From the NCBI GenBank assembly GCA_946965045.2, contig OX337236.1:3534001-3598000 (forward strand): a stretch of DNA of 64,000 nucleotides. The letters are read 5' to 3'. The DNA comes from Epithemia pelagica. Lineage: Eukaryota > Protista > Bacillariophyta. Positions 1 through 64,000 of this stretch are shown piece after piece. Position numbers and translations under genes: made by a program. How positions within the stretch are numbered: position 1 is the first letter of the stretch; each line of letters opens with the position of its first letter. Under the pieces are notes generated by a model, which was not told where the DNA came from, ran no database searches, and saw only the letters and a program-made list of their open reading frames with translations.

Positions 1-1356
1 ACTGTCCGCAAAGTTCTCGTCAGGGTTGACGAACATGATGCACTTCCATTTCGTCATACTAAGAGGGATCCATGTCATGTTGCGAGACACAACCAAACGT
101 GACACCCCACTCCTAGGGAACGCAAATTTCCATTTGCACGGATTGTGGCAGTGTTTCCAGTGGTGGAAGATTGTTGTTTGGGTGGTCCGTATGTACGAAT
201 CATCGATTTGGTTGGCACGACAACTTTGCGCAAACGGTTGTCTCGAACGGTACAAATGACATCTTGTCGTTGGTGCAACTCTGCGGTAGACGCAGTAGTA
301 TTGTGGAATCCTGTCTAGTGATAGACACCGGTATCCTCGTCGGGTTGCCACACAAGATAGTGTGCTTCTGCTGCTTCGGGTGGATCTGGTGGTTGTGGTT
401 GCTCCTCAGTGTTGTCGTCCCACGAAGATCGAATGCTGACACCTGGACGAATACTGGTGGGCGGTGGACAGTGTTAAGGGGCACACGAGATCCATTCTTC
501 CTTGTCGTTTCCAGCAAACAATTGAATCGACAAGTGTGTTTTCAATCGGTACGACACGAATTGGTGCCGTGACCTGTAAGCCTGGATGACGGATGCGAAA
601 GGCCTGAAATTGTTCCGCAAAGGACTTGTCGGCGGTGTCGGTGGCCTGTGCACAGGTGGAGGCCAAGCGCAACCAGAACAAGAACGACCCGAACCAGGAG
701 TACCCACGAATCGTGGCAACGGGCTTGGGACAATGCTTCATCACCACCATTCTATGCTGCGTTCCCTTGTCTTTCTTGGTTGGAACGAGACTGCCACGCC
801 CCCACAGTCAATTCGAAACAACAACCACAAGAAGAAGACAATGATGGTGATAATGACGATGATGCCAGACAGTGTTTGGCTGCATCACTTGGTTCCATTT
901 CATTCCAGGTTTGGTTTCTTTCTCTGGTTCGTGGTAAGCCCATCGAGAAACGAGACGACATCCTCCCCAACCTTTGCTATTGCCCTTACAATTGCCTGTT
1001 TCAATGACTGGTGGGGAGAGGAAGATGACTGAGTTTTCACAAGATCACTTGTCCGTGACTGGTTGGGAAAGGTGCCAGAGATTCGGAAGAAGACAAATTA
1101 CAGATAGTGAGTGCTCACAACTGAACCGTGGATCTTCACCGCTGGGGATAAGTCCGAACCCATCAGCAATCACAAACGCCCACGATACTCCCAAGAAGGA
1201 TGCATGGTCTTCTTCATCGCGTTGCTACGGTCACGATTTGTCTCGTAACCCATCCATTTCGTCAAGATAGTCGTCGTGCTTCCAGTCCACACCCATCAAC
1301 ATCACAACGAAAGGAGCAGAGCAAACCTACGTGCGTCAAGACAGTGTCTCGATCCC

Positions 1357-1371
1357 CATAAATTCTGCAGT
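1357..1371 (+). promoter_or_regulatory. Conserved CATAAATTCTGCAGT motif upstream of Kelch starts
   Basis: The motif or a close variant lies ~30 nt before the ATG of K1, K2, K3, K4, K6, K7, K8, K9 and K10. It is not in frame with the ATG in K1 or K2, so it is non-coding. K5, K11 and K12 use a different upstream sequence. Confidence 0.55.
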
Positions 1372-1385
1372 CATTGTTTAGAACC

Positions 1386-2576
1386 ATGACCACGACACTG
1401 AAAGAACAAGCACGACAGTCGGGCCTTGTCTTATCGGACGAGCCACCTGAATGGAATTTCGAGGACTGGCCTCCTCTTGAGGGTGGATGGCGTGTAGAGC
1501 ATAGTTCGGTCGTACTGAGTCATCCCGATAACAACCAAGAACAAACCGTCGTCGTGTTGGGTGGATATCGAACAGGTCAAGGCGAGCTAGATTCCATTCT
1601 TGTATTAAACTTGGCAGAATCGAACAAGCAGTGGCGAGAAGGGCCACGCATGAACCAGAAGCGTGATAGACATGCCGCTGTTGTGTGCAATGGAGGCATT
1701 TACGTGCTGGGAGGAGACAATGGAGGTTCAGATTTGAATTGCATGGAACGAATCGACGCCAATGATTTGCTTCGATCATCTTTGACAACCACCACCACGC
1801 ATGAGAGCAGTTGGACGGCATTGACATGTCGCTTATCAACGCATCGATTTGGATGTTGTGCTGTTGCGGTTCACAACCGATACATCGTTGTAATGGGTGG
1901 CCATAACAACGATGGTTATTTGTCGTCGGTGGATATTATAGATACAAACAACCACACTGTCACTGCGGGACCATCCATGACTGTTCCACGACAATTTTGT
2001 GCCAGTGCGGTCATTGGCCACCGCATTTTTGTCGTTGGGGGGCAAAACGATGATGGCCATCTTGACTCTGTGGAGTATTTGGACTTTGCAGAGGAGAGAA
2101 AAGATGACACTTTGTCTACAGTCATTCCCTTTTCGTCTAGTTGGATCACTCATTCGGAGTTGAGGCTTTCCGAACTTCGAGGTTCCTGTGCAATGGTTGC
2201 TGTGGGATCGTGTCTGGTGGTGGCGGGTGGACAAGGCCATTCAACCGTGGAAGTCTTGGATACGCGCCGCAACCGCGTTTGGAATCTCCCACCATTCGGA
2301 AATCGCCGCGATGACTTCAGTATGGCGACTGTTGCCAATCAAGTTGCCGTGATAAGTGGTTTTGGCAGTCCTACCTGTGCGACATTACCACCACTTGACA
2401 AGCATACGTGGTGTTTTCAACGACTCTGTGAGCAGCAGCCCAACAGATGGTGTCTTTTTGGGGAAGGAATGAATATCCAACATGCTGATATTTCACCCTT
2501 CTCCACCTCGACATCAGCTCATAAACGCGCAAGGCCCAATACACGCCGTGGTGATGAAGGGAAGGATGGAACTTGA
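1386..2576 (+). CDS. Kelch-repeat beta-propeller protein K1 (intact, 396 aa)
   Basis: Open intronless ORF. Six Kelch-like blades (R-x-x-H/C...V-x-GG...S/T-V-E/D, e.g. KRDRHAAVVCNGGIYVLGG, PRQFCASAVIGHRIFVVGG). ATG 1386 aligns with the MTTTLKE start shared by all paralogs. Confidence 0.9.
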   Translation: MTTTLKEQARQSGLVLSDEPPEWNFEDWPPLEGGWRVEHSSVVLSHPDNNQEQTVVVLGGYRTGQGELDSILVLNLAESNKQWREGPRMNQKRDRHAAVVCNGGIYVLGGDNGGSDLNCMERIDANDLLRSSLTTTTTHESSWTALTCRLSTHRFGCCAVAVHNRYIVVMGGHNNDGYLSSVDIIDTNNHTVTAGPSMTVPRQFCASAVIGHRIFVVGGQNDDGHLDSVEYLDFAEERKDDTLSTVIPFSSSWITHSELRLSELRGSCAMVAVGSCLVVAGGQGHSTVEVLDTRRNRVWNLPPFGNRRDDFSMATVANQVAVISGFGSPTCATLPPLDKHTWCFQRLCEQQPNRWCLFGEGMNIQHADISPFSTSTSAHKRARPNTRRGDEGKDGT

Positions 2577-5500
2577 AATTTGCAACGTATTGCATGTATG
2601 TCCTAACAATAGCGGAACTTTAGCATTATCATTTTACTTTCAAACAGTAGTTGGATTGTTTTCTTTATGACATTGCGACCTATAGAGATATAATGTACAC
2701 TGTTACTAGTAGAAAACGAAAGTTACACTATCCTGCATTACACCGCAAACAGGAGTGGAGCCAGGCCTTGGATATAGATGCCCATGGTACCATGCCTCTC
2801 TGCTGGTGAATGAGTCGAGTTATCTTGCTGTGGAAGATTATGGTTGCGTGCCTGAAACACTTGGGCGCAGCGACTCGTTTGGACGGTCGTCTTCGTTCCG
2901 ACCATGCGTTCAATTGTGGGGCCCGGTCCTTCTATGGCGAACGCCTGCGTGAGAGGACAGTACCCCGTCTCTCGGTGCTTGTGGTTTCGGGTGACAGGAC
3001 ATTTACGATTCCTTTGGATTTTGTGACACCGTCGTGTGTTCGATATTTTCTCCAATTCGGCAATTTGCTTGCGTCGATCCAGCAATCAGTCTCTCCGTAG
3101 TGGCTCGTTGACAGTCCATGGGTATCGGTCCATGGGGATCCACAAGAACAATCGTAGTGTGCAAAGTTATGTCTTGCCCCTCAATGCCAGTTCCGCCGAA
3201 ACCTTGTTGCACGATTACAACACTGTCGAACAGCAGTGTTCGACATTGACCAGTACATCGTTTGTGCCTCGTACAACACCCACACAACCACGACCCGCGC
3301 CGATCATGTCATGCCTATCGTCTCACAGCAGTGTTGGACCTCGATCACTACCACATTTGAGCCTCGTACCGAACTCAGCGGTACCAACAACAAAACCACG
3401 ACTACGAATGGCGCCGATCATGTCTTGGCTGTAGTCTACTAGAATTTGTGGTTGTTGTTGTTGTTTTTCTTCTTCTTCGTTGGATTCTAATTGGTGTTGC
3501 TGCCTTGTCGTTCCGCACCAACACCAAGCTTGAATCTTCGTACGTATTAGACTTGAAAGGGCGATGCGATCCTTTCCATAACCAGTTCTCCACTACTCCA
3601 ATCGGACGCATCGGGAGGAGTTGAATAAGGGTCCATCCTTCAATCCGTAGTACTGCACTCCTCGTCACGGTGGTCCGACTTTGAGCATTCGTTGCAAACA
3701 TACGACGTTTCCATTCAGAGCTGTCGTCATAAGTTTTATACCAGTTGCTGTAAAGCTCCGTACTTTTTTCGAGCCTCCACATTTTTATGTACTTCCAATG
3801 GGGCGACTTTGTTATCGATTCAGCACAGGTCCTTATGGTGTCATGTCGAGAAAGAGTCCACATATAATTGTCGACCAGACTGCCATGCGGTGCCACAACA
3901 CAAAGAGATTTGCGTGGTCTTGTAGTATGGTGTTCTTTTTTCGTCCAGTGTGACAACGACAAATGCGGTTTGGTTGTTGTACTTTTGCTATGGGATTCCA
4001 TCGTGGTTTCTTTCCTGGCTTGCGCTGTTGCGGCGACACTGGGCTGTAGGAGCACTTCCCACATACAAGTCCAACGCCAAAAGAGAGACATGTCTCCACA
4101 CCGTCGTCAGATCGGTCCATGGAGATCCACAATAGCAGTTTGCAGAGTACAAAGTATAGCCACTTTCCCATGGCACTATCACGGTTGAAGGAAAAAAAGA
4201 CCATGGCAGTGCTGCGGCATCCCCACCCACCACCTCGTGTCCAAGTATGGCTTGCTGGATTGTCCATGCGAGCAAACAAACGGCAAACATCTGGATTCTA
4301 AATGACAGCACTTGTAGTGCATACATGAGTATAACACTTTGGTACTCTACGTTGCACGTCCAGTGGAGGAGGACACAAGAATGGCCGTGCTGATCTTTTT
4401 TTGTCGTTTCAGTAGCGGCGCGCGTGCGGCAGCTGGAAGAATAGACTATTCCCTTTGTTTTTTGTCGTTATAATAGATCTTCCCCCAAACTGTGATGTGG
4501 AGTCCCCCCCCCGAAGTCTGTGGAGTCCCTTCCAAATCTTGGTCGCGGAATGAGGACAGGAATGGCTCGCAGGCGCGCCGACCGAGACGAGCCCTTTCAC
4601 TCTAAAATATCGATTGATGTCGTCGCCAAAAGACGACCACTCTAATAGAATCTACTGCTACACTCAATGGGAAACAAGGCATCTACGGTATCATCCCAAC
4701 GGCAACGGCGTTCGATCCACGGCCATGGCAACCAAAGAATGATCATCCCAATTGGCAGTCTAAACTCATGGCAGGTATTCCTTGGGGAACATCCAACCAC
4801 ACTCCCACTAGCGCAGCAGACGGACCCATAGTATGCATAGCGCAACCTGCCCGTGCTTTTTGTAAAAGACGCCTAGCCAGGTTGCCAAGGTCGACAGTTT
4901 GCAAGCACCGTATCTAGTCATGTCAGCAGCAAGTGGCCTTGGCCTTTTCATCCGTTGTATTACTGGGGTTCTTCGCGAGAGACACCACGACCCATGGCAA
5001 AAATTGCAGGATGACGAAACTGACCTGAGCCAGTACCATGACAACGACCGGTACCATCGACCAGCAGCAGAAGAAGTAGCAGGATGGAACAAGAGCAGTG
5101 CCAACAACAACAGCTCGGTCGACGAAACAACAACAGCTCGGTCGAACCAAGTTCCTTCCCAGACGACTCGCATCACTGCCCAGGTCTCCATCCACGGCCT
5201 GTGCGCAGTGTCGTTGCTTCTCGGTCGACTGGGTATTCGTTGATGGGAACCAACAACCAGACAGACTGTGAAGCCTTCATTGCATTGTTGGGTATTCCAT
5301 GGCATTGTGATTGGGATGTATGGAAATGCCAAACAAAACCCGACCATACTGTACTCCACCACCCATTGCAAGTGACATCCGCAACAACCACAAAAGATCT
5401 GACACGAATCCACACGACCTTCATGGCTGTTACGGGCATTCTCCGTTGACGCTTCATGGCCTGCAGCTATAACTTTCTTCTTGTTCGGTACTAAAGGGAC

Positions 5501-18478: not shown

Positions 18479-21188
18479 TGCCCTCTTGGCTACGATATCT
18501 TGCAAGTTGAACAGGCCACGATACAAACCCCTGCAACATCGTCATCGTCGTGGTTGAGATTTCATCTCGTCAGGAGGACATTTGCGACAGTCAAGTTCCT
18601 CCAGAACAAAGCCAAGAAAAACCCACCAAATCCAACTGAAGGTCGTGCCAGTTGTCGCAATTGACCAGCAGAACGACTACAAGGAATCGAGTCTTGTCGT
18701 TGTCACACCACAACCTCCCGAACTACCAACATAGCCACAAAAGAAGAAGGCCCTCTTCCTGACGTACCGCAATTGGACGAAACCATCTTGGAAGTGAGCA
18801 TTGATGAAGACGACAACGAGCCAGGAAACTTCCACCACCACTACATGCCTGGAAACAAACTCCTCCTCATCGCGATGTCGTGCCCCTCGATGCCAGTTCC
18901 GCTGAAACCTTGTTGCACGATACAACACTGTCGTACAAGAGTACTCTACCTCCACTTTGTGCCTCGCACTGAACTCAGCAGCACAAACAAGAAAACCACG
19001 ACCACGAATGCGGCCGATCATGTCTTGGCCGTCTTGGAAGCCTAGCCACCCACACCGTATGAATGATTGGTCGTGTTGGAACAGTGGTCGCCCGAGGCGG
19101 TCGTGCCTGAATGGTTCTGTTCGTCGCTGTCGGAATGGCGCAATTCGCGTGTCTGTTTCTTGTTTATTGTGGACAGGATCGGATCTCGCAGAATGCAGAT
19201 TGGGGACTGGAGGAAGGACGATTTGGTGAGAAAGAAACAGAGGGGATCCAAAGCATGGTTCCTTGTAAACTTATAGAGATCGAGTCATATTTGCCTTCGC
19301 AATTGCCATGGATTATGTTTGTCGTTTGTCTGGATGGTCCATGTTCCTTTGCGTCTTTCTTCGTGCCCGTGGATTGCCATGCCACCACGTTGGTCATGGT
19401 ATCGCACCGTTGCTCTTTTTGCCCTTCTCCTGCATACAAAATAAATAGTCATACTGCGGTGTTTCATTGGTTCAAGTCGACAGTTTGAGCATACTTTTGG
19501 CCAACTCGGTATACCAAACGACAACATGCGCTTGAGAGTATTGGAAAGTTTGACTGGTAGCTTCTATGATGCATCCTTTCTCTCTATACGTGCGCTTCGA
19601 ATCTGGATAGCATTGTGTTTCTTATGAGTGAATCGGCCATTTTCAAAAGGCGTCTACCGAGGTCGACAACGCTTAAGGACACAAAGTCACCACGAAAGCT
19701 CATGACTGTTGGACCATGCGGAATAGCCAGTTCGAGACATGAATAAAGAAAGTGCAAATCTCTGCAGTTTTCTTGTGCGACTCGTTAGTTCTGATTTGTT
19801 TGATATTGCCTCCCAATCGCGAACCACCTGTGATCGTGATACTATGATTCCCTTCTTGTATGCTTTGGTGGCTTGTGGCCGAAGACACATCATTGTTGGT
19901 GACAGACATACCATCTGGTACCAACCAAAAGTTGAGGCCATGTTGCTGCAAGGCGGAAGAGGAACATGGTTCCATGTGGTGGTGGGAGTCATTGGTTCGG
20001 TGCAACAGTGCCACTTGCAAGTGTCAGAGTGGGGGTGTGGGTGTTGCCGGTTGCCAGTTGTTGTGGTTTGGGTGGTTGAGACTTTGTCCTTGTGTCTCAA
20101 TGGTCCTGCTACTTTTGTCTGGTGGCAGGGCCATTGTCGTCGTGCTTGTTGTTATGGTTGCTTGATGCAGCCAGGGAAGCGCTTGACTCATGTTGGCCGT
20201 TGTAGGGAGGTGTCTTGTTGGTGTGACGTTATTGGTGGAAGCAACATCCCCACTCGTTGTTCTACCACAGCCGAGTGACCGTTAAAAAACTCGAGGCTTG
20301 TTCCAATCCTGTACATTCTCCTGACCCATGCTGTCAACCACATGAATCATGGTTGTGACGGACAGTGACATCAAAAAGGGTCGCTCTCGTCCTTGTGTTC
20401 TTCTCTTGCGGTTCTTGTGGGTTGTTTCCAAGGTCTAGTGGGGGATGGTGAAGAGACTTCTTGCAATGACTGCCGCTCACATATACAGGTCGATGATCAG
20501 GGGAGGAGGAGGACGATAACGAACTTTGCGCCGCCGTATTACGAGATAAAAGAATGGGGAAGATTGAGACCGAGGAACAGCAGAAAAGACTGCCAGAAGG
20601 CGCGAAAAGGTCAATCTCCGGAGCAAAAGACGGCGACAGCGACAGCGACACATTGTGGTGGAGGTATCTTTTTCCTGTCGTTTCGATTTTCGATGGATCT
20701 TCCCCCCCAAAGCTGGTGTGGAGTCCCCCTCCCCAAAGTCTGTAAAGTCCATTCCAAATCTTGGTCGCAGAATGAGGACAGGAATGGCTCGCGGGCACGC
20801 CGACCGAGACGAGCATTGTCACTCTATCGTATATCCAATTCGAATCGACAGAGGCTCTCGTCGCCAAAAGACGACCACTCTAATAGCATCCACTGCTACA
20901 CTCGATGGGAAACCATGGAATTGCAACTTTTGAGACTCTGGTAGTGACGAGGCATCTACTTGTCTTCTTCCTTTTCTTGGTGACAGACTACGAGAGTATA
21001 TTCAAGAGTATCAACGAGATTGTCACAAAGATTGGCTGGACGGGAAAAACGAGAAGGCGCTTCGACAACGACCATTCCACAACAGAGGCACCGAGATGGT
21101 CGACGGCCGCATGGTACTAGAATGACTCCCCCCAAAGCCACATGGTGGCCATCTTTTCGTGGGACCCACCAATACATTGATGTTCTGC

Positions 21189-21294
21189 TACTAGAGGGGA
21201 TTGAAAACAACAGACAATGAGCGCATCCTGCCATTCTTGTTTACTAGAGGGGATTGAAAACAACAGACAATGAGCGCATCCTGCCATTCTTGTT
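21189..21294 (+). repeat. Perfect 53-bp tandem duplication
   Basis: TACTAGAGGGGATTGAAAACAACAGACAATGAGCGCATCCTGCCATTCTTGTT at 21189 and again at 21242. The paralogous spacer near 5588-5645 has a single unit. Confidence 0.9.
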
Positions 21295-22119
21295 ATACGA
21301 CTCGAGAGGATAACGGAGGAGCACATTCCAATCGATATACTGCTACTTCCCATTGGCGCTTGGCAAAGCTCGAACAATGGCGGAAACTAGAGACGACGGA
21401 ATGACGAACATGTCCGCAATCAATGCAGCCGCAGTAATGGGTGTAGCAGCGGCAGCACCGAAGATGCAGAAACGTTGCGATGCGTCATTCCTCATCCACA
21501 AAACTTCCCTTATAAGCTTGCTCCTACGGCTAAAAAGCTTCGAGATGGTCTGCCCAAGCCCGTGGGCAATCATGGTTTGCAATAAGACTCTCGATCGATT
21601 AAGTGGTCCCAGCAGTTGGTCGTCTTCCCCACAACATCCTAACATTCATCCTCAGAGTGAGGGAAGATCCGCAATGAGGGGTACATGGAATCTCTTGTTT
21701 CGTGTAATGCACATCACCATCTCATGTGTGTGGTTGTCGAAAGCAAAGGCTCGGATTGCAAGGAGATCCTCTTGTCATGAGCTCCCACGAAGAACCTATG
21801 GATACAACACAGGGAAAGAGAGAAATAGATGGAAACCATAAATATCAGTGGTTGTCTTTCTAGCCATGAGGATTATTTCGATATCCAAAACTTTTATGGA
21901 ACTCCAAACAAGAATGCGTGATCTTCTTCATTGCGTGTCTACGGTCACGATTTGGCTCGTGGCGAAAGCTCTTACCCCTCTTTGGTCCATCCATTTCGTG
22001 CAGTCAATCGTGCTTCCAGTCCGCACCCATCAGCATCACAACAACAGAGCAAAACCACTAACCACTTAGCATACAGTGTCTCGATCCCCATAAATTCTGC
22101 AGTGGAAACGTTTGCAACC

Positions 22120-51312: not shown

Positions 51313-54300
51313 TGTAAACTGTAGTGCAGATTTTGTTACTTCTCAAATTATGGCTAGTTACTAAGTTGGGTGTAGTGTGAGATCGATATTTTTTGAGTGT
51401 GTGTGCTGAAGGGACATGGTGGAGGCGCATGACCGCTGATACTCGCCCTTGATCGAGGGCTACCAACCCATAATTTTCTTGCGGGCTGTTTCAAAAGGCA
51501 CCGTGTCAAGTGGCTTGGTGAAGGTGTCGCCAAGTTGGTCGGTTGTGGCAATGGCCTTCATGAAGATACCATTGGGATCAGAGCTGTTGGGTGAACTGAG
51601 ATGTGAGCGAAACCAGTGATATTTGATGCCGATGTGTTTGCTGCGTGGTGTCATACGTGGGGGATCTTTTGTGGCCAGTTGTAAGGCGGCTTGGTTGTCC
51701 TCCCAGACGGTACAGACGAAGCTGGGACCAGCTGCATTGAGGTGCAAGTGCTTGATGATTTTGGCCAATTGATTCCGTAGAGGCAGTAGGGTACGCATAC
51801 TTGTTGAAGCAGCAATATATTCGGCCTCCATGGTGGAGAGGGCGATCTCTGTTTGAAGTTTACTGCTCCAAGTGATAGGAGATTGTCCAATAGTGATGAT
51901 GAATCCGGTTCTGGAACGTACAGAGGTGGGATCGTCGGAGTTTTCGTTGCTCCAGAGACCAGCGAAATCGGCGTCCACGTAGCAGTGTAAACTCAGGTCT
52001 TTGGAGGGTTGTAGAATGAGTCCTCGTTTGGCGGTTCCCATTAGGTAGCGACCGATTCGTTTGAGTGCTTCGCCGTGCAATGCTGTGGGATTATTGCTAA
52101 ATCGCGCTGTCTGGTTAATTGCGAAAGCACAGTCAGGTCGTGTATTGTTGCCAAGGTAGAGGAGCATTCCTACAACCGATCGGTAATTGTAGGTAGCGTT
52201 GAGTGGCTCACCATCGTTTTGGTTGCGGGTGTTGGTTTGGGATTAGATTTCTCCAGACCCAATGTGTTGATGATGCTGCGTGTGAGATGAGGTTGTCGTA
52301 GTTCGACGGTTCCGTTATCGTGGTGTTTGATCTCGACACCGAGGTACGTTGGGAGGTCACCGAGATGTTCGTAGTCCATCTTCAGTTTTGTGAGGCCTTC
52401 AAGGATCCGGTTGACACTCGCTTCGTCATGCCCACAGATCACTGCGTCATCCACATAGGTGATCATGACACATCCTAGTCCGATGAACAAGCAGGGATCT
52501 GATCCATCGGGCTTAAGCCCAATTTGCTCCAATTTCTCCCGGAGGTAGTCATACCACAAGCGTGGCGCACGACAGTCTCCATACAGACTCTTCGTAACTT
52601 CCAGCACCTTATCGCGTTGTCCGGTGCCATACCCTTGGGGCAAGTTGACGTAGAATGGTTCTGGGAGATCCGACTGCACGAATGCGTTTTTGAAGTCGAT
52701 TGACACAGTGTGTAGCTTGTGTTGTATCGACAAGTTCAGTAGGAGACGAACCGTTGGCCAATCAATCACTGGGGCGAAGGTATTGTCGCGGCTGAAAGAG
52801 GCCTTCTGTTGGTCGCCTCGGACGACCAGTCTGGCTTTGTAGCGTGATATCGTTCCATCGGGTTTACGTTTTCGTACGAACGTCCACATGACGTCAACAA
52901 TCTCTTTACCATTTGCCTTGGATCGTGGAACAAGCTTGAAGGTTTGCTTTGCTTCTAGTTCGTTGAGTTCCTTGTCCATGGCGGCGATCCATTTGTCTTG
53001 TTCCTCACGTGAAAGCATTCGGATGTCGAAGTAGGACGGTGCATCCTCATTGATGGCCTTGGCGTTGAAAAACAATGGATGCCAATCGTCGATGATTCCC
53101 AGTGGTGACTGGATCTGGGCGAGCAAGTGTGAATCGAAGGTTGAGGATAACTTGTCTGGGTGCAGAGACGTTGGAAAGTCCCATTGGAGGGAGTTAGCGT
53201 AGTGTCCGAATGCCACAGGGTCGTCGTTGATGGCAGACATTGAAAAGCATCGGTCTTGGGAGCTAACATGTGTCCAGACACTGTCTTGAGTGCCATGGTC
53301 CTTGTCTGGGAATCGTGTGGGAGCGCGACGTTGTCGTTGAGGACGTGCTGCTGGTGGTGGTACAGACTCACCCAGTGTCGATCCAACTGGTGATCCGTCG
53401 ACCTCGCCCGATTTTGAAGATGGTAATGGAGTCGGTAGTTCCTCGTCCAAGTTCAATGGAGGTGGGTCGATATCGTCGTCAAGGGGGTCGAAAGAATCGG
53501 AAGCTTCGGCCGTCTCGTGGAGTGGTGAGAGAGGAGTGTGATCGTCCAGCTGGAGGGGTGACTGTGAATCAAGGGTCGTCCGGCGATGATTACGACCAAG
53601 AGCTAACGGTGTACTAGGTGTTGTAGGACTGTCGTGTGACGGTGGCTGTGCCTGCTCGCCCTCGGGGACACTCGGGACTGGAAGGGACGGAGTGTCATCG
53701 AAGGAAACGGTAGGGGAAGACCAAATCGAATCTAAGTCGGGCATAGGCCCATCGCGTACCGGGTCGTGGTCATCCAAGTAGTGGTCACGGGTAAAGAAAT
53801 CCGGCAAACTGTTATCGGAAGGGAAAGACCATGTACTGTTGACAGACATGAATAGTTCATCATAAACCACGTGGAACTGAGGTGAAATGTGGCCAGTATC
53901 CAGGTTCCGAATCATTCCAACCAAGCTTGAATGCTGTGAAGAAAAACCAAGGAACTGACCACGTCGCGAGCAACGGGCCCACTTGGGAAGTTTCTTACCA
54001 TCTTGTAGTTTAGGATCTAAAACGTAACTAGGACAGCCCCAAACACGAACGCGACGTAACAGCGTGCAGTCAATCTTGGATCCAGAGAAAACTTCCATCG
54101 GTGACAGATTCGTATCTTCATGAGGAACGTGGTTGTAAATCCATGTGGCGTACTCAACAGCCATGGGCCACAAGGACGGACAGAAAGCGGACGGCCATCG
54201 GATGTGGCAGTGAATCATCATGGCCCGTGCCATGTAGGTGACAGTCTGTATTGCCCGTTCAGCTCCGGCATTTTCATGATGGGCACCAACGCCAGACAAT

Positions 54301-55805
54301 GTGCTTGTTGGAGACGGAAATGTGTTACGGTCAGCCTTGATAGATTCCTGAAAGGCATCAGAAGTAAAGACGCCATTGTCGGAATGGTAGCGATGAACCT
54401 GTCGTCCAACTTGGAGAAGAGAAGTTTCGAACTGGTTCTTTGAAATGATAGTGTCGCTACTACCAAGTGAGACTTGAGGGTAACAGAAGATCGCCTTTGA
54501 GCCGTGATCAAAGAAGATTGTACCTCCTACGAAGCGATGCTGTGGTCGTTCTCGACCTCGAGTATGCCACAAGCGTCCACGAACGGTAGATTCGAAATGA
54601 TCCATGGAAACCAATTCACCTGGAAGGAGTTTTCGATCGGTTGGCGTCAGGTGACCGGCCTGGGGATGCGGAACGTTGGCTTTTGTTTGCGTTGGACGTC
54701 GTCGAGCCTTCGCGTATAAACATGCCAAACATTTGGGAGCTTCACAGGTGCCACTGCTCTTGAAAGTGGCAGGAAGGCATGATGGTGTCATGTCGTCGGA
54801 ATCAGAAGTCGAACTGTCTCGGTACAAACGCTGGATGCGACGCATATGGACGTGACCCAAACGTTGATGATCCAACAAAAGCTGCTTTTGAGGTCGACTC
54901 AGATTGCGATTGGATGCATCCAAAGGATTGTCTTCGTGTTCGGATAAGAATTGGTGCAAGGTTGGTGGTGATTCGACCAATGCTCTGTCTTCTAAATGGC
55001 AACGACACCACTGATTGGACCCACAACAACAATCAACCGGTCGGTGTTGAGGCGTTGTATGACTGGCGGCCTTGATATTCTTGACACGAACGATTGGAAG
55101 GTTGCTTGAGTAGTCGATGGGAACGGTGATGCGGCGTTCACTGTTCTTGTCAAGCATGATGCTTGCGAAGGACTGATTGCTTACGAAGGTTGGAAATCGC
55201 TGATCCTGTCGGAGATATGAGGCATTAATTTGAGGGGAACATAGTCGTGTTCCAGCGGCCTTGCAAAGATTGGCAGGATAAACCCATCGACGTATGGAAC
55301 CGTCCTCATGAATAGCGTCATATCCAACAATCCCTGTGCCAATAATGGGAAATCGGTTGTCACTTGCGGCAGTTGACATGGAGCCGTAGTTTCCATACTC
55401 CAACTCGACAAAGTCATCTTCGTTCATGGTTAAACCGGTTGAGGCGCCAGTGTCGAGGATAATTGGCACCACAGGATCTGTTGAAGCATCGCTTGTTGTT
55501 GTTTGGTAAACGGTCATGGTAGAGTCAATATGATGCATGGCATATCGGTACGTGTATCAAGGTGTATTGCTGTTGGCACGCAAAAGGTTGCTAAAATCCG
55601 GACCAAGTCGGTAAATGTGAGGATCATTGGACAAAGGTAAAAGGGTGTCTCGTGGCAAAAGGCGACGTTGATGTCCATTGTAACAATCAACCGTGGTGTC
55701 GTAGCGGCGTAGAGCACGCATTATCGGCCATGTATTCCAATCCGCTTCGTGTCGTGAATCACGCCATGTCTTGGTTCTTGCTCGTGCTTTCGTAGTATGC
55801 TCGCC
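51313..55805 (-). mobile_element. Ty1/copia (CoDi-like) LTR retrotransposon, 5'-truncated
   Basis: Domain order PR-IN-RT-RH. PPT-like AAGGGCGAG (51450-51442) follows the RNase H stop, then a candidate short 3' LTR (~51441-51313; end uncertain because no partner LTR is present). The element stops at CCTAAGG 55806. Confidence 0.85.
51460..55538 (-). pseudogene. copia pol polyprotein with frameshifting deletion near 52215
   Basis: Protease IILDTGAS; HHCC HQRLGH...CLAC; integrase SMDHF / YHSDNG / GAERAIQ; RT YKARLVVRG, DFKNAF, SLYG, YVDD; RNase H YVDADFAG, EAEY, WEDN, FTKPL. DGEPLNATYNYRSVVGML is in a different frame from the upstream PTPATKT. Confidence 0.9.
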
Positions 55806-56756
55806 CCTAAGGGTTTTGCTAGAAATCGACCTTTTTGTCGTGCGCACTAAGTTCATTCTGTAGAATCACATGCGCGACCACAAAAAGGTCAATTTTGAAT
55901 CACTGTATTGTTGCGTGCGAAATTTTAGTGCGACCACAAAAAGGTCGATTTCGACCACAAGAAGGTCGATTTGCAAACCTACATTAACTCTCCATAGTAA
56001 ACCATATTCCTTCTTGTCGCTCAAAGATTTTGAGGTGAATGATCTCTGGTGTTAGGGCCTTTTCAGTTTTTGAGGTGAATGACCCTCTTTAGGGCCTCTT
56101 TTTTGGCTGCAAAGGGTCATACCTCCCAAACCTATTTTGACCATAGGAACGACAACAGCCACCATGGAGTTTGACGATTACTTGGGGCTTGTGGACTTTG
56201 CCACACCCTGTGGTTTGGTCTGTAAGCTCTGTGGTGGTGGTTTCCGAGCAAACATGAAGTGTCTTGCCCGCCACGCCAAGACCTGCTCCAAAATTCATGG
56301 GGTGTCCTTTCGCTTTCCTGGGAGACATCTTGGTAACAAAATACACACTCTTGTGGAGAATGCCAACAACCAACCATTTGATTGTTTCATTCATGAGTCA
56401 AATGATACAAGAATCAAGTATTTCTGTAGTGACTGTGACAAGATGTTTCATGTGAAGCTTTTGTGCAAGAAGCACGTTGCTGGTTGTTGCGCTAGTGCCA
56501 AAGTCATTGCCAAGACTTTCCTCAAGCTGAAGTGTGGATGCTTCATGCCAAGGCCCCAAAGAGAAACCATGCAGCAAGAAACCAACTGGACCCCAATAAT
56601 TCAAGTTGAGAATTCAATATTCACCATGCCGCTGCCCTGCAGTAGGTTACCCAACGAGTTTGCAAGTTCGATTGAACCATTATTGCATCCAAGCGACACT
56701 TTGGGAAGGTGGCCCGATGTACTGAGTAATATGATTCCTGGCACGTTGGAGAATGC
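55806..56756 (+). mobile_element. CCTAAGG-led segment E1 (family member A): left end and truncated ORF
   Basis: Begins CCTAAGGGTTTTGC at the point where the copia stops. Carries CGACC-N7-GGTCG boxes; the ORF from 56164 is cut at the next CCTAAGG. Confidence 0.7.
56164..56756 (+). pseudogene. N-terminal Zn-finger region of recombinase-helicase protein, member A (truncated)
   Basis: TPCGLVCKLC...RH, YFCSDCDKMF...KKH, KCG and IEPLLHP align with member B (TPFGMGCGIC...RH, YSCRC...RH, SCG, FVPLFHP). Confidence 0.65.
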
Positions 56757-59700
56757 CCTAAGGATATTTGCCTTTTTTGGGTGTCTTTAGTACTAGAGAC
56801 CGTAGGATTTGAACGTGTGCATATGAGCACAAGGGGCTATAGTATCTGTGCATATGAGCACTGATATAAATGCCTTTTGTTGCAAAAGAGCACTGCCCCT
56901 TGTGCAGATGAGCACAGAATGTCTACGCCCCGCTCAAGTCTAATTTCTAAGCACTCATATTCAATATGAGTCATTAATTTCATTCATTACTAACCATTAC
57001 CGCACTCTTAGTTGTTCCCCCGTTCTTTTGGCGCGAAAAGCTTGCCTGCGTGCCCCTTCGCGCCCAACATCTTCACCTGAAAACCTCAATAGGCCCAACA
57101 TCTTCACCTGAAAACCTCAATTGGCCCAACAAAAGGTCATTGTTGTTTCATGAATTATGACTCTTGCAAAGAGGCCCATCCTTGCCTTTGCTTGAGAGTC
57201 GGCTGGTTATGTCTCTTCCTCTGTTCCATGCACACGAGGAAACCAGCAATGGCTACCAACAATGGGCCTGGAACGCCATCTCCATCCCGGAGACGGCCTG
57301 TGAAGAAGATCCGTTCCGATCAGGGCATTGGCTTGTCATGTTTAGATGCTACAATTGTGACACCCTTTGGTATGGGATGCGGCATATGCAAGAAATCATT
57401 CGGAGAAAGTCTTTGGTCCATGTAGCGGCATCTAAATCAACATGGAGTCTGTGTCTCAGCAACTGACAACCGACTCCTTGTTGCAAGAAAACAGTCCCTT
57501 AAGCAAATTTTGCAAGAAGACCCTCATACCGCAAAAAACTTCTTCACGGGGAGGTCTGTTCTTGGATATTCCTGCAGGTGTCTTGTTGGTTGGACAAGAC
57601 TCAGCAATGTTATGCGTCATCTCTCCTCGCCTAACTCCTGTGGAGCCATTGGGCCTGAGAGGGAACAATTACAGGTCACTTCTTGTGGGAGGCTGGTATC
57701 TATGACTGCTGTCAGTATGAAATATTCCCAAGAGGATCCAATCTTGAAAACAAAGAGAGCGGTCACCCAAACTTTCCATATGGTATCTGAGGAGATGGTT
57801 GATTGTTTTGTTCCTTTGTTTCATCCATTGGCTCAGGAGGAACACTACTCTTCCAAGCCAGATGGAGCAACCTTTCAAGAACGGATGGAAAATTTGCTTT
57901 CTCTGACAACCACTACCAGCAAAGATGAAGTCAACAAACCCATACTCAAGTTTTTCTATGATTTTGGAGAGAAGTGGTTGTTGCATGGCGCTCCAATTCA
58001 TGTGAAAATGGTCCCAGCAAATTTTCGGTCGAAGCTTTTGGTATTTGATGGTACAAGGGAAAGTGGGTCACATGCTGGCGCAAATACGACCTACACATTC
58101 ACCAAGTTTCCAAACGGACTTGTTCCAGAGCTCAAGAAATTGTTGTGCTTCATCCACAAGCAGCAGCCATCCATTATGAAGAGAGAATGTGACTTACAGT
58201 CATTACTTGTTGATCTGTGTCTCGAGACACCTGACTCTGTCAGGCACCATACTATGCTCATGACTTATGCGGTTGGCCGGACTTTGCGGCATAAGGACAC
58301 CACAGGGTCATTGTCCGTACTGGGCCCATCACATATCGCAACAATGTATTCCGCTCTGCTCACCATTCTAAGGGCGAGTATATGTTCCTTGATCTACAAA
58401 ATGGACAAAGATTATTCTCAACAGGCCTTGACTCTAGTAAAACGGGCACAGGAATCCATAACAATCAATTTCTTGGCAAGTTCCATTCGACGCATGCGCG
58501 AAAAAGAAGCACTTATGCCATCTTCCCGGAAAGTGTCCATTCGAACCACAAAAGATATATTGGTTGACAACTTCCTTTTTAAATTTGATATTTGGAGGAA
58601 TGTTGTACCATGTATTGAAGAAAAGTGTATTTCATCTTTCAGAACTCTTCTGGTTGGTGACCAATGGACTGATTTCCTCAACCTAAATTTGCACTTGTAC
58701 GTCAATTTGGTTCCATCTTCTGGATTGGTGTCTCTTCAGGTCGAGAAAGAATCTTCTATCATAACATCTGAAGTGATTCAAGTGCACCATGCCTTCAATG
58801 CAACATCTGTTGATATTCTGGTATCATTCTTGGAACTTGCATTCCACGGAACAGGGTTGGGCTCCATGCGATATGCAGAAATTGAAAGGTGTCTGTTTAG
58901 TAGCATTCGTTGGCATGGCCAACAATGCTACTATTACAGTCACACCGAGAAAGTATACACTGCACTCAACAACAAACCTGGAAAGCTTGTTGAACACAAG
59001 CTACCCAAGTCACTTGGACGCATATTTTTGGTCTTCAGAGTTGTATGTCAACACCTTCAGTCACAGCTGAAGCATGACTTGCGGAGACTTGTACCAGTGA
59101 GAAATATCAGGGTACACGAGATGACCGATGCTGTGGCAACAATCTTTGGCTTCGAAAACCAACCGGATTGCACCCAAGTAAGGCACTTGTGGACATCAAT
59201 CTCTAATATTCTTTTCCCGGAGTTTGATGAAATGTCGATCCAGAATCAGTACACAACCAAGACTGTGGCTGAACAGTCAGGTCACAGCCTCATAACACAT
59301 CGTGACCATTATGGGTCAAGCAATGTAGCTGCAAAAGAAGACTTGTTCGAGACATATCATAAAGCACTGGGTGAAAAGTCTGTTGGGAAAGAATCAGTGA
59401 CCATGAAACAAGACTTGACGGATGGGGAGATATTGAGGACATTGCACAAACTCTTTGGGCCTAGTGCCACATACACGTGTTCTGAACAACACGCCATGTT
59501 GGCTTTTGCATTGAGAGAAAGCACATGTCATGGACACTATGGTTTACCATGTGGAGGTGGCAAGTCACTATCATGGTTAGTCCCGGTGGTAGGAGCCAAG
59601 CTACATCACTTGGCTCCCAAGACCTATATGGTAGTCGTGCCCTACAAATTTTTATCTGGTTACCATGAAGAACAAGTATCACGCAACTTGCCATCAGGTG

Positions 59701-59973
59701 TGGAAGTGTCTTCCATGACAGTTTTGGGCAATCAAGTTACAGCAAACCGACTGCCTGATGGTCTCCATGACTTCAAAATGTCGCCAGACATTGTTTTCTT
59801 CAGTCTCGAGGCCATATGGATGTTGGAGAAATATCATTCCTCTACTATAGAAGAGTGGGTGGAGAAGTCAGCTTTGGTCAAAATCATAATTGATGAGGTT
59901 CACACAATTTACTCGGAGCTTTCCTTTCGGTCCAAATTTGATTGCCTTCCACGTCTTGTTCGCTACGGAGTGC
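56757..59973 (+). mobile_element. CCTAAGG-led segment E2 (member B), longest copy
   Basis: Begins CCTAAGGATATTTGCC; the same ~490-bp left end recurs at 61786 and 62341. Ends at CCTAAGG 59974. Confidence 0.75.
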
Positions 59974-59978
59974 CCTAA
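57249..59978 (+). pseudogene. Zn-finger + tyrosine-recombinase-like + RecQ-like SF2 helicase protein (nonsense at 57423, truncated after helicase motif II)
   Basis: Recombinase-like residues GSMRYAE (R ~58869), TEK, QVRH (59175-59186) and AEQSGHSLITHRDHYG (H...Y). Helicase: Q-motif-like TYTCSEQ, Walker A LPCGGGKS, motif Ia VVVPYKFL, DEVH (59892-59903). TAG 57423 is CAG in the paralog at 63006. Confidence 0.8.
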
Positions 59979-60595
59979 GGATATTTCACTTTTTTGGGAG
60001 CTTCTAGTACAAGAGACCGTAGAATTTGAACGTGTGCATATGAGCACAAAATCCTATAGTGCCTGTTGCATATGAGCAAGGATTTGTTGCGGATGAGCTG
60101 CAATTTGTTATGCTTTTGTTGCGATTGAGCAGTGGCCTTGTCTATGCCCCTTTGACCACTCCCCAAAAGCTGTCATATTCAATATGCTCTATACTGGCCA
60201 AATACTTTTCAGAGCTCTGCCAGTTAGGTTTTTGTCTTGCCCTACTCTACATAGAAGAATCAAGGTAAGATTGAATTTCCTTTGATTTGCTGTACAAAAT
60301 TTCCTTGTTACTACAAACCAGCTAATATGTGTGTACGAGTGACATATATTTGTAAACACAAATGACCAACTAACTTTTTTGTACAATCTTTTTCCCCGCC
60401 GAATGACGCTGGCATTTCAAAGAAAAATCTCATTTCACCCATCACTAGTTCTCATCAAAATCCCATTTTGACCATTCCTAGTTTATGCCTCTAGGAGTAG
60501 GTCTTTGTACCTACCCATCATTCGTCCAGTAAATTGGGCCCAATGCAATTCTGCAAAGGGTCATCACTCCCTTTCTTTGTTTTGTGTGAAATGAC
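59974..60595 (+). mobile_element. CCTAAGG-led segment E3 (diverged B-like left end)
   Basis: CCTAAGGATATTTCACTTTTTTGGGAG...GAGACCGTAGAATTTGAACGTGTGCATATGAGCACAA is a diverged version of the E2 end. No ORF is reached before the next CCTAAGG. Confidence 0.7.
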
Positions 60596-60984
60596 CCTAA
60601 GGGTTTTGCTATGTCGTGCGCACTAAGTTCATTCTGTAGAATCACATGCGCGACCACAAAAAGGTCAATTTTGAATCACTGTGTATTGTTGCGTGCAAAA
60701 TTTTAGTGCGACCACAAAAAGGTTGATTTCGACCACAAGAAGGTCGATTTGCAAACCTACATTAACTCTCCATAGTAAACCATATTCCTTCTTGTCGCTC
60801 AAAGATTTTGAGGTGAATGATCTCTGGTGTTAGGGCCTTTTCAGTTTTTGAGGTGAATGACCCTCTTTAGAGCCTCTTTTTTGGCTGCAAAGGGTCATAC
60901 GTCCCAAACCTATTTTGACCATAGGAACGACAACAGCCACCATGGAGTTTGACGGTTACTTGGGGCTTGTGGACTTTGCCACAC
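60596..60984 (+). mobile_element. CCTAAGG-led segment E4 (second copy of member A end)
   Basis: Near-identical to 55806-56207 apart from a 14-nt deletion and a GT insertion. The ORF from 60942 is cut at ACAC|CCT, where E1 continues CCTGTGG. Confidence 0.8.
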
Positions 60985-61785
60985 CCTAAGGAAATTTAGG
61001 TCTAGATTCTAGTTTTTGTACCAGAGCCCGTAGCTTTCTACAGGTTGCACTTGAGCTGCATATTTTGCATATGAGCTCCCATAGGTACAGCTAGGTATGG
61101 CCCTTTTTGCACTTGAGCTTTGGTTTTGATATGCCACTTTGCACTTGAGCTCCAAAACCAATTAAGCCGGGCTTCAATATGACCATTGTAACATGACAAC
61201 CTGGATAGGGACTAACGCTAAAGGAGTTTTGTCTCAATGATAATCATTAGGTCCTTTTTCACAGCCAGACATTCTAGTGCTAAGGGCCTCATTCGTTGCC
61301 AGATTTGTAGTGAATGACCTTGCTTAGGGCCTCTTTCACATGGAGATAGTGAGTGAATGACCTTGCGTTGTACCTGGTTTCTTTTGTGAACCGTCACATC
61401 GAAAAGACTCTTGTTGACAATGGCTCCCATTTCTACAGTTGGGCCGGGGACCCCATCTCCTTCAAGGAGAAGGCCCATGAAAAAAATAAGACTCTGCAAT
61501 GGTGGAGGAATGAGCAATGTTGGATTGTCGTGTGAAGAAATGACCTTGATGACTCCCTTTGGTTTTGGATGTCGGGTCTGTGACAAACCATGCGGGGCTT
61601 CGTTGTGGTCCATGCAACGACACTTCAACTCCCATGGAATCACAGTTTCCATGGGAGAGAATTTGAGACTGCAGAGCATGAGAAAGAATAAAGAGGACCA
61701 AGTGAGACAGAATTTTTCATCCGTTGTGCAGTGTCTTACAGATGAGAAATTGGCAGGATATTCGTGCAAGTGCATTGTTGGGTCT
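60985..61785 (+). mobile_element. CCTAAGG-led segment E5 (member C) with truncated ORF 61420-61785
   Basis: The ORF MAPISTVGPGTPSPSRRRPMKKIR...TPFGFGCRVCDKPCGASLWSMQRHFNSHG...GYSCKCIVG is clearly paralogous to member B. Confidence 0.8.
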
Positions 61786-62340
61786 CCCTAAGGATATTTG
61801 CCTTTTTTGGGTGTCTTTAGTACTAGAGACCGTAGGATTTGAACGTGTGCATACGAGCACAAGGGGCTATAGTATCTGTGCATATGAGCACTGATATAAA
61901 TGCCTTTTGTTGCAAAAGAGCACTGCCCCTTGTGCAGATGAGCACAGAATGTCTACGCCCCGCTCAAGTCTAATTTCTAAGCACTCATATTCAATATGAG
62001 TCCTTAATTTCATTCATTACTAACCATTACCGCACTCTTAGTTGTTCCCCCGTTCTTTTGGCGCGAAAAGCTTGCCTGCGTGCCCCTTCGCGCCCAACAT
62101 CTTCACCTGAAAACCTCAATAGGCCCAACATCTTCACCTGAAAACCTCAATTGGCCCAACAAAAGGTCATTGTTGTTTCATGAATTATGACTCTTGCAAA
62201 GAGGCCCATCCTTGCCTTTGCTTGAGAGTCGGCTGGTTATGTCTCTTCCTCTGTTCCATGCACACGAGGAAACCAGCAATGGCTACCAACAATGGGCCTG
62301 GAACGCCATCTCCATCCCGGAGACGGCCTGTGAAGAAGAT
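61786..62340 (+). mobile_element. CCTAAGG-led segment E6 (member B copy, cut after 20 codons)
   Basis: Near-identical to 56757-57310. ATG at 62279; cut at GAAGAT|CC. Confidence 0.85.
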
Positions 62341-63452
62341 CCTAAGGATATTTGCCTTTTTTGGGTGTCTTTAGTACTAGACACCGTAGGATTTGAACGT
62401 GTGCATATGAGCACAAGGGGCTATAGTATCTGTGCATATGAGCACTGATATAAATGCCTTTTGTTGCAAAAGAGCACTGCCCCTTGTGCAGATGAGCACA
62501 GAATGTCTATGCCCCGCTCAAGTCTAATTTCTAAGCACTCATATTCAATATGAGTCCTTAATTTCATTCATTACTAACCATTACCGCACTCTTAGTTGTT
62601 CCCCCATTCTTTGGCGCGAAAAGCTCGCCTGCGTGCCCCTTCGCGCCAAACATCTTCACCTGAAAACCTCAATTGGCCCAACATCTTCACCTGAAAACCT
62701 CAATTGGCCCAACTAAAGGTCATTGTTGTTTCATGAATTATGACTCTTGCAAAGAGGCCCATCCTTGCTTTTGCTTGAGAGTCGGCTGGTTATGTCTCTT
62801 CCTCTGCTCCATGCACACGAGGAAACCAGCAATGGCTACCAACAATGGGCCTGGAACGGCATCTCCATCCCGGAGACGGCCTGTGAAGAAGATCCGTTCC
62901 GATCAGGGCATTGGCTTGTCATGTTTAGATGCTACAATTGTGACACCCTTTGGTATGGGATGCGGCATATGCAAAAAATCATTCGGAGAAAGTCTTTGGT
63001 CCATGCAGCGGCATCTAAATCAACATGGAGTCTGTGTCTCAGCAACTGACAACCGACTCCTTGTTGCAAGAAAATAGTCCCGTGAGCAAATTTTGCAAGA
63101 AGACCCTCATACCACAAAAAACTTCTTCACGGGGAGGTCTGTTCTTGGATATTCCTGCAGGTGTCTTGTTGGTTGGACAAGACTCAGCAATGTTATGCGT
63201 CATCTCTCCTCGCCTAACTCCTGTGGAGCCATTGGGCCTGAGAGGGAACAATTGCAGGTCCCTTCTTGTGGGAGGCTGGTATCTATGACTGCTGTCAGTA
63301 TGAAATATTCCCAAGAGGATCCAATCTTGAAAACAAAGAGAGCGGTCACCCAAACTTTCCATATGGTATCTGAGGAGATGGTTGATTGTTTTGTTCCTTT
63401 GTTCCATCCATTGGCTCAGGAGGAACACTACTCTTCCAAGCCAGATGGAGCA
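62341..63452 (+). mobile_element. CCTAAGG-led segment E7 (member B copy, ORF 62832-63452)
   Basis: Near-identical to 56757-~57871. It has its own CAG>TAG at 63075 and is cut at GGAGCA|. Confidence 0.85.
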
Positions 63453-64000
63453 CCTAAGGAGAAAGTGCCCCCTAGCGTACACCCCACGTAATCTTGGTAT
63501 TGCACGTAGTGTCTCAGTTATGCATGTTAGCATAGCCCTAGTGTCTTAGCATTGCATGTAAACAAAGCCACTTGTGTCTCAGCATTGCACGTAAGCAAAG
63601 CCCCTTGTGTCCCAGTGTTGCATGTCCTATAAGCCTATTCTCCAAGCCGCATACTCTTTTCAGATATAGTGAATACACATGCCTCATCATATTCCTAGCG
63701 TGCCATGACAGACTCATTGCTAACAGGTCTATTATTTCATTAGGACCTATACAATGTCTCCATAGGGTATGAATTGGGGTCATCTCGTTTGAAATTTTGA
63801 AGATTTCCTGTGAATGACCTGCATTGGGCCTTTTTGTCTTGAAGATTTCCTGTGAATGACCCTGCATTGGGCCTTTTTGTCTTGCCCATTTCGACCATCC
63901 AGCTGCAAACCGACAATGGCAGCAAATCCTACTGCTGATCCTAAGATGGAGCTGTTTGATCCCTTAAGTGGGAAGGCCTTTCGGGGTCATCATGGTCTCC
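63453..64000 (+). mobile_element. CCTAAGG-led segment E8 (member D); ORF starts 63916 and runs off the window
   Basis: Begins CCTAAGGAGAAAG. A 42/43-bp tandem containing GTGAATGACC...GGGCC (63799-63883), as in members A and C, precedes MAANPTADPKMELFDPLSGKAFRGHHGL. Confidence 0.6.

Follow-up and report, generated by a model that had tools for sequence, protein, structure and literature searches.

The stretch of Epithemia pelagica DNA analysed here (the window: 64,000 bp, C9:3534001-3598000, in an assembly of 60.5 Mb and 23 contigs) closes on a stack of eight distally truncated elements of the telomere-linked helicase (TLH) type, which represent at least four families and are arranged head to tail in the last 8.4 kb before the telomere. 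Each element begins with the heptamer CCTAAGG, and the encoded protein joins a RecQ-type helicase to a domain that we predict to be a tyrosine recombinase. The stack sits on a truncated copia retrotransposon and is capped by the telomere. Only 1,190 bp separate the end of the window from the end of contig C9, where a real (TTAGGG)n telomere stands, and the array is therefore the distal subtelomere of C9. Past position 64000 the contig contains, in order, the last 175 bp of the outermost element (family D), (TTAGGG)6, a 430-bp fragment with 99% identity to an internal piece of the C13 subtelomere, and at least 558 bp of (TTAGGG)n.

CCTAAGG has ten matches in the window, against 2.65 +/- 1.71 expected, a count that 0 of 100 shuffles reached, and eight of the ten crowd into 8.2 kb on one strand. 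The original prediction placed eight plus-strand copies between 55806 and 63453. Seven of its positions are exact (55806, 56757, 59974, 60596, 60985, 62341 and 63453), while the sixth copy starts at 61787, not 61786. The only further copy it had noticed, a non-junction at 12959, does lie in ordinary sequence on the plus strand; a second one was missed at 37437 on the minus strand. Each copy in the array is a breakpoint, as had been proposed. On its left the preceding unit halts mid-element, according to the stretch and the reading of its open reading frames (ORFs), and on its right a non-coding leader runs into an ORF opening with zinc-finger motifs. For seven of the eight segments a longer copy exists at another chromosome end, collinear from base 1 onwards and 94-99.6% identical, and the D tip is unique within our sample, which comprised 32 loci from the C contigs plus metagenome homologue contigs, labelled with L-numbers. 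The predicted five or more end variants (A, B, B-like, C and D) are real tip families; the B-like one is called B' below. Sequence specific to this chromosome ends with the copia, and the first graft was made onto it. Its second copy, C10:380859-381107, is identical up to window position 55808 (through CCT) and then diverges.

Table. Features of the C9 stack in their order from the copia outwards, in window coordinates.
Feature	Coordinates	Strand	Remarks
Copia-type retrotransposon, 5'-truncated	52170..55805	-	pol ORF 52170-55538, 1122 aa
Stump 1, family A, 951 bp	55806..56756	+	98.8% collinear with first 951 bp of a 3.1-kb A copy (C4); CCTAAGG tip, three 25-nt subterminal direct repeats, pair of ~40-bp repeats with TTAGGGCC; zinc-finger ORF from ATG 56164, cut at 56756
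Stump 2, family B, 3217 bp	56757..59973	+	98.7% collinear with a 3.3-kb B copy; tip, four TGCAnATGAGCAC-type repeats; ORF from 57150 with in-frame stop 57423-57425, cut within the helicase past motif II (DEVH)
Tyrosine-recombinase-like domain (predicted), stump 2	57912..59444	+	Residues 255-765 of the B protein
Candidate catalytic codons, stump 2	R 58869-58871, K 58950-58952, R 59181-59183, H 59283-59285, Y 59310-59312		
RecQ-type helicase, N-terminal part, stump 2	59445..59973	+	Walker A GGGKS 59553-59567, DEVH box; truncated by the next graft
Stump 3, family B', 622 bp	59974..60595	+	Non-coding left end only; 96.9% collinear with first ~600 bp of a 4.4-kb B' copy (C7)
Stump 4, family A, 389 bp	60596..60984	+	98.1% to stump 1; 30-bp deletion near tip; ORF cut after 23 codons
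Stump 5, family C, 802 bp	60985..61786	+	93.8% to a 1.85-kb C copy (C5); tip, four TTGCAyTTGAGCT repeats, start of zinc-finger ORF (ATG 61420), then cut
Stump 6, family B, 554 bp	61787..62340	+	99.6% to stump 2; cut 30 codons past the ATG that opens MATNNGPG
Stump 7, family B, 1112 bp	62341..63452	+	98.3% to a B copy (C5); cut in the N-terminal region
Stump 8, family D, 722 bp in total	63453..64000	+	Extends 175 bp beyond the window to (TTAGGG)6
Pairs of ~40-bp leader repeats	56025-56100, 61278-61363, 63797-63892		In D, TTGGGCC replaces the telomere-like TTAGGGCC

The element consists of one long ORF that reads toward the telomere after a non-coding leader of ~360-490 bp. Leaders contain 3-4 family-specific direct repeats of 16-33 nt, located 50-180 bp from the tip and often ~31-33 bp apart, which resemble protein-binding sites and are predicted to act as such. 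They also carry, just upstream of the ATG, a tandem pair of ~40-bp repeats, GTGAATGACC...TTAGGGCC, which are candidate promoter elements or binding sites of telomere proteins. The protein comprises, in this order, two C2H2 fingers (invariant C77, C80 and H94, and C144 and H157), a middle domain of ~500 aa, the RecQ-type helicase and C-terminal Cys/His clusters. The helicase belongs to superfamily 2 (SF2), and its closest solved relatives in a profile search of PDB sequences are RECQL5, BLM and RECQ1 (E 1e-10 to 1e-7); with the whole protein as query, the same search returned helicases only. A Pfam scan found just DEAD and Helicase_C, with no family covering the middle domain, and in the elements it detected neither a rolling-circle Rep nor a reverse transcriptase or polymerase domain.

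This architecture matches a published family. TLH genes are repeated, telomere-adjacent genes of fungi and of the choanoflagellate Monosiga, and their function is stated as unknown (PMC1635262; bioRxiv 10.1101/2024.02.27.582403). Their proteins carry two N-terminal C2H2 motifs and a conserved 'TLH domain' upstream of a RecQ-type helicase (bioRxiv 10.1101/2024.02.27.582403). Copies, whole or truncated, occur singly or in arrays; they are bordered by single telomere repeats and are often truncated terminally (PMC1635262; bioRxiv 10.1101/2024.02.27.582403). The diatom elements likewise are a repeated gene beside the terminal telomere repeats of many chromosome ends; they encode two C2H2 motifs and a ~500-aa domain directly before a RecQ-type helicase, and they form arrays of full and truncated units bordered by single telomere repeats, here 71 joints with one CCCTAA-like unit each. 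When the whole protein is compared with the Atlas, its closest clusters consist of fungal DEAD/Helicase_C proteins 1212-1736 aa in length, one set of which has a C2H2 OrsD domain (score 0.97); ordinary RecQ clusters score 0.77-0.79. The closest clusters are again fungal for the middle domain alone (0.95-0.97 for the two queries taken together), and the model of this domain can be aligned with an Ascomycota DEAD-helicase cluster over 327 residues. Word-indexed protein searches for named fungal TLH proteins gave only unnamed or 'RecQ helicase' metagenome proteins. The elements are therefore filed as TLH-type elements of a non-fungal host by architecture, habit and fungal clusters, and not by alignment with a named TLH protein. 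The original prediction had called them uncharacterised, which is right for only half of the matter.

The middle domain belongs to a family with 545 cluster representatives in a library of 1.84 billion proteins, mainly on short metagenome contigs. When 43 members were aligned, at 20-35% identity, only R574, K601, R678 and H712 (B numbering) were invariant; Y721 was conserved in at least 90% of them, and R-K-R-H-Y are the most conserved residues of the domain. Its GHS-x7-Y spacing is that of XerD and other Xer-type recombinases. An AlphaFold model built on the alignment of this family reached a predicted local distance difference test (pLDDT) of 90.4 and a predicted template modelling score (pTM) of 0.81, and nearly all of its top 35 Foldseek matches are Cre, XerA or XerH. 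VIA-align gave Z scores of 11-12.5 over 267-296 residues against Cre, integron integrase (IntI) and XerH, 8-9.5 against bacterial, poxviral and human topoisomerase IB, 6 against Flp, and at most 4.5 against unrelated folds. The model has the two-domain fold, core-binding plus catalytic, of tyrosine recombinases and topoisomerase IB. The conserved R-K-R-H-Y corresponds to the catalytic set Arg-Lys-(His)-Arg-His/Trp-Tyr, as read from the alignment rather than from a superposition of active sites. A weak feature match links the domain to the ResT/TelK cluster (0.86). On the strength of model and alignment together, the middle domain is predicted to be an enzyme of the tyrosine-recombinase fold with a conserved catalytic residue set.

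The distribution of the elements ties them to chromosome ends. B-type left ends are almost confined to the two ends of contigs: they are on the minus strand where a contig starts and on the plus strand where it ends. Nearly all large contigs open with ~500 bp of (CCCTAA)n. We surveyed joints in 20 chromosome-end pieces, each turned toward its own telomere, out of 46 ends in total, most right-hand ends being left out. These pieces contain 71 CCTAAGG element joints, and in 71 of 71 the polarity is the same, with the ORF toward the telomere. At least ten tip families occur genome-wide, at least five of them outside the five of the window, and they diverge directly after CCTAAGG. The original prediction of a recombinase-helicase element whose left end is fixed and bears CCTAAGG, whose right ends vary, and which has a uniform orientation and no terminal inverted repeats (TIRs) or long terminal repeats was thus well founded. 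Eight stumps are stacked here and 20 on C1. No stump retains a complete ORF; full-length or longest copies adjoin telomeres, and an intact B ORF of 1357 aa is found on C7 (L005:702-4772, minus strand). The 97-100% likeness among element copies and the intact state of this B ORF lead us to consider the activity recent. About half of the stumps in the 20 end pieces are shorter than 1 kb. Telomere repeats directly abut cut elements at at least 10 ends; terminal truncation followed by telomerase healing is thus routine, and this probably explains why stumps are mostly short. On C1 (C1:1-20000, L003 + L031) a 5.4-kb unit of five stumps (B' 2849, B 1009, F 356, E 173 and B 1009 bp) is repeated head to tail at least 3.5 times, which means that multi-stump blocks were amplified after their formation.

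Two schemes had been offered for the stack of C9. According to the first, one whole element after another was inserted inside its predecessor, to a depth of up to eight, and their right-hand remainders would follow downstream in reverse order. Each joint does interrupt the element on its left. However, none of the predicted remainders is present at the contig end, where the D stump is followed by a short telomere tract, the unrelated 430-bp fragment and the telomere, and remainders are likewise absent at the other ends examined. Provided that the contig end is correctly assembled, nesting is refuted by this, and we give it practically no credence. The second scheme, one-ended transposition of truncated copies in a rolling-circle-like manner, comes closer to the truth, although no rolling-circle Rep is encoded, and the elements occur only at chromosome ends, facing outward.

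The joints were analysed further through the 29 for which an uninterrupted parent copy of the stump survives. The parental target contains CC in 28 of them and CCC in 24. By position, the parent has C at -1 in 24, at 0 in 28 and at +1 in all 29; at +2 it has T in 13 and A in 10, and the remaining positions are not conserved. The copia junction at 55805 also obeys this CC(C) rule. Within the stack, the parent reads CCTGTGG at the end of stump 4 (j4), where the joint has CCTAAGG, and CCGTTCC at the end of stump 6 (j6). Joints with a base other than C at -1 retain the stump's base, and +2 is always the element's T, so the crossover falls within CC(C). The part of a joint that comes from the element begins at TAAGG or earlier. 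Along the strand running to the chromosome end, the tip reads CCCTAA+GG; as read from these joints, it is a single telomere unit, CCC|TAAGG, inverted relative to the true telomere. Altered tips are found at further joints (CCTAAGT.., CCTAAG-TTTTGC, CCTAATAG.. and one with a 5-nt filler), and because they retain only CCTAA, this is the constant part. The original prediction had seen in CCTAAGG the palindromic core of a directional recombinase. As the variants lose the palindrome and the targets share only CC(C), this idea is weakened, and the heptamer is better taken as an inverted telomere unit. A site like that of poxvirus topoisomerase IB (YCCTT, in the reverse complement of most tips) was also considered and rejected: the A2 variant (CCTAATAG) has no YCCTT. 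Identical stump ends precede different families, three at j10 and two at j18; either hot CCC sites were used more than once, or the exchange took place precisely at a joint already present.

Some joints depart from this anatomy. On C16, an 872-bp B stump passes directly, without an intervening CCTAAGG tip, into the interior of a D-type leader at D ~348 (L004:6678-7055; C16:3181677-3182054); this leader is the sole other D sequence within our sample. At the left end of C3 (L007:~4100-4115) an A stump is followed by ~2.7 normally oriented telomere repeats and then by the interior of B, from B ~935, with a B(3672)|B(1928) joint farther out. The arrangement on C3 indicates that healing followed by capture of an internal fragment also occurs. 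The sequencing runs that contain the stretch exist only as short-read unitigs, which break at every repeat joint; in them the parents show intact as loose ends, and 0 of the listed joints are bridged. The search for runs turned up none of RNA.

We hypothesize that the stacks are built by the element's own recombinase, which would graft the element, together with everything distal to it, onto CCC sites of a terminal stump. We consider this mechanism probable. The outermost element would lose distal sequence again and again through terminal deletions, each healed by telomerase. The recombinase, seated on the subterminal repeats of a donor element, would then cut this donor at its tip, after which strands would be exchanged with a bare CCC(T/A) site of the resident stump that terminates another or a sister end. 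The short shared identity could act as a homology check beside the cleavage site; CTnDOT-type integrases are recombinases that require only ~2 bp of identity. The resident's distal part would be replaced by the donor element and its distal DNA, telomere included, which would become the new end, and repeated cycles would leave one stump per event. The helicase may open duplexes or ends for the reaction.

Several observations weigh against the grafting mechanism. The canonical second His (HxxR) of the recombinase pentad was not found in the domain alignment. Classical tyrosine recombinases need binding sites on both partners, and the targets here show only CCC. The joint at 63453 (j7) is the sole one of the window without CC in the parent, which has ACCTTT. 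Besides the canonical joints there are others, such as a stump followed by (TTAGGG)2-6 and an internal fragment, the tipless B|D joint and the one with a 5-nt filler, so further processes act at these ends. In addition, microhomology-mediated joining by the host could likewise produce an identity of three bases at a constant donor end.

The last point leads to the main rival, in which host repair forms the joints and the element's enzyme does not; we think it rather unlikely, and still the most serious of the alternatives. A resected or eroded end would anneal via CCC to the GGG-3' of a linear copy, or invade a donor end, and be sealed by microhomology-mediated end joining or by break-induced replication, as in an amplification resembling alternative lengthening of telomeres. 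The recombinase-like domain would then serve another role, or merely make the donor end. The shared sequence is only 2-5 nt long, as is usual in microhomology joining; telomerase healing and capture of internal fragments are evident at other joints of these ends; and multi-stump blocks are tandem-duplicated (the C1 unit) and common to several ends, as recombination or break-induced replication predicts. Nevertheless, the donor breakpoint falls on the same base in 71 of 71 joints and in at least ten diverged families, which needs a site-specific cut or a defined end. Moreover, the microhomology is fixed on one trinucleotide instead of varying in position, and the conserved catalytic set of the encoded protein would be left unexplained.

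The complementarity of the tip to a C-run would also suit a primer-alignment site, and many terminal copies are truncated and directly capped. Both facts would fit a process of terminal copying with the logic of telomerase or of HeT-A, in which a de-capped 3' end in CCC primes on a single-stranded DNA or antisense RNA template ending in ...TTAGGG, and incomplete copies, truncated at birth, are healed by telomerase. A fixed proximal end, a variable distal end and head-to-tail order are the hallmark of the telomeric retrotransposon arrays of Drosophila. However, the Pfam scan revealed no reverse transcriptase or polymerase domain in the elements, and the ORFs face outward, the opposite of arrays templated by sense RNA. 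Natural 3' ends are G-rich and cannot pair with TTAGGG, and every event would need erosion to exactly CCC. With no polymerase encoded, the wrong polarity for a sense RNA and G-rich natural 3' ends, terminal copying is less likely than host repair and, in our opinion, improbable.

These elements share only some of their features with other residents of chromosome ends. The Y' elements of Saccharomyces are subtelomeric helicase-encoding repeats in tandem arrays, amplified upon telomere failure. Their copies are full-length, separated by normally oriented telomere tracts and spread by homologous recombination, and to our knowledge they have no recombinase domain. The diatom units are likewise helicase-encoding subtelomeric tandem repeats, but they are truncated, carry an inverted telomere unit and encode a recombinase-like domain. 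HeT-A, TART and TAHRE of Drosophila and the telomeric Penelope-like retroelements form head-to-tail terminal arrays that can replace or supplement telomerase, with their ORFs toward the centromere. They resemble our elements in that the centromere-side end is constant and truncation toward the telomere varies; membership in either group was rejected, as there is no reverse transcriptase domain and the ORFs point toward the telomere. Helitron helicases are of the Pif1 type. A Helitron-like nature was discarded too: Pfam shows no HUH Rep, the helicase is an SF2 enzyme of the RecQ type, and the other domain has a predicted tyrosine-recombinase fold.

Cryptons integrate as complete units at scattered sites, have two defined ends and are not known to carry a helicase. 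Here there is one defined end, everything distal is replaced and the location is strictly terminal. Membership among Cryptons was excluded on similar grounds: no remainders or right-end joints are seen, only the left end is defined, and the elements are strictly subtelomeric. The likeness to Cryptons lies in a tyrosine-recombinase-type enzyme, the absence of TIRs and the few bases shared with the target (PMC3212892). Tyrosine-recombinase chemistry on telomere sequences is performed by the telomere-repeat-specific recombinases of endogenous nimaviruses (PMC10871703) and by the hairpin-telomere resolvases ResT and TelK, ResT having a DNA-unwinding activity as well (PMC5388405). Neither produces one-sided stacks: nimaviruses integrate whole genomes into (TAACC)n tracts (PMC10871703), and the resolvases make hairpin ends on palindromic sites (PMC5388405).

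In comparison with the TLH genes already described, the E. pelagica elements have a non-fungal host and at least ten diverged tip families, and their exact tip, its inverted polarity and the CCC target rule are defined here. The polarity of the border repeats in fungi is unstated in the published accounts; in the diatom elements they are inverted. Those accounts propose neither a function for the domain nor mobility by a recombinase (PMC1635262; bioRxiv 10.1101/2024.02.27.582403), and we found nothing in the searchable literature linking a telomere-linked helicase or the TLH domain with a tyrosine recombinase. The identity of the TLH domain as a tyrosine recombinase, the exact tip and the CCC rule thus appear to be unpublished in that literature.

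Metagenomic homologue contigs (L011/12, L033/34, L035/36 and L037) showed no clear left boundary. Two of them, L035 and L036, encode a 1440-aa marine-metagenome homologue (one from a Tara sample) with TTAGGG tracts and degenerate GGTTAGAATGAG repeats ~1.5 kb downstream (L035:7970-8605 and L036:6890-7549), in another organism and with the same outward polarity as in the diatom elements. Two 2025 biofilm metagenome runs (X4 and X5) contain parts of the elements at 97% identity or more, and hence a close relative lives in biofilms. Other features were observed at the ends of the assembly. A 178-bp-period satellite of ~2.7-3.4 kb lies between the outermost element and the telomere at C4:~18,710-21,400 and C9:~520-4,000 (L006 and L002). 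Telomere-adjacent tracts may be variant, with alternating TTAGGA/TTAGGG on C6 (L015, C6:1-10000) and TTCGGG among TTAGGG on C17 (L024, C17:1-10000). At C4:17986-19206 (L006:3987-5207), a (TTAGGG)n tract faces a (CCCTAA)n tract across 200 N, from which we conclude that the scaffold of C4 joins a separate chromosome-end piece to the true chromosome start.

In summary, our analysis provides three leads: a recombinase fold with its residues in a TLH-type domain, one exact tip base, and CCC as the only target requirement. The lead is general, because the family is widespread, as its 545 cluster representatives indicate. We tentatively propose, as a possibility somewhat short of probable, that the TLH genes of diatoms, fungi and choanoflagellates form a hitherto unrecognised class of autonomous DNA elements, which combine a tyrosine recombinase with a RecQ helicase, cut at a single inverted telomere unit and graft themselves, along with their distal DNA and telomere, onto any CCC close to a chromosome end, thus re-capping chromosome ends independently of telomerase. 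If true, grafting would explain the telomere linkage of TLH and Y'-like helicase genes everywhere, and the recombinase domain could account for the spread of these long-puzzling chromosome-end genes. If the enzyme makes the joints, this would be a new kind of eukaryotic mobile DNA, one that moves by exchange of chromosome ends, and TLH elements would be a possible backup for telomerase.

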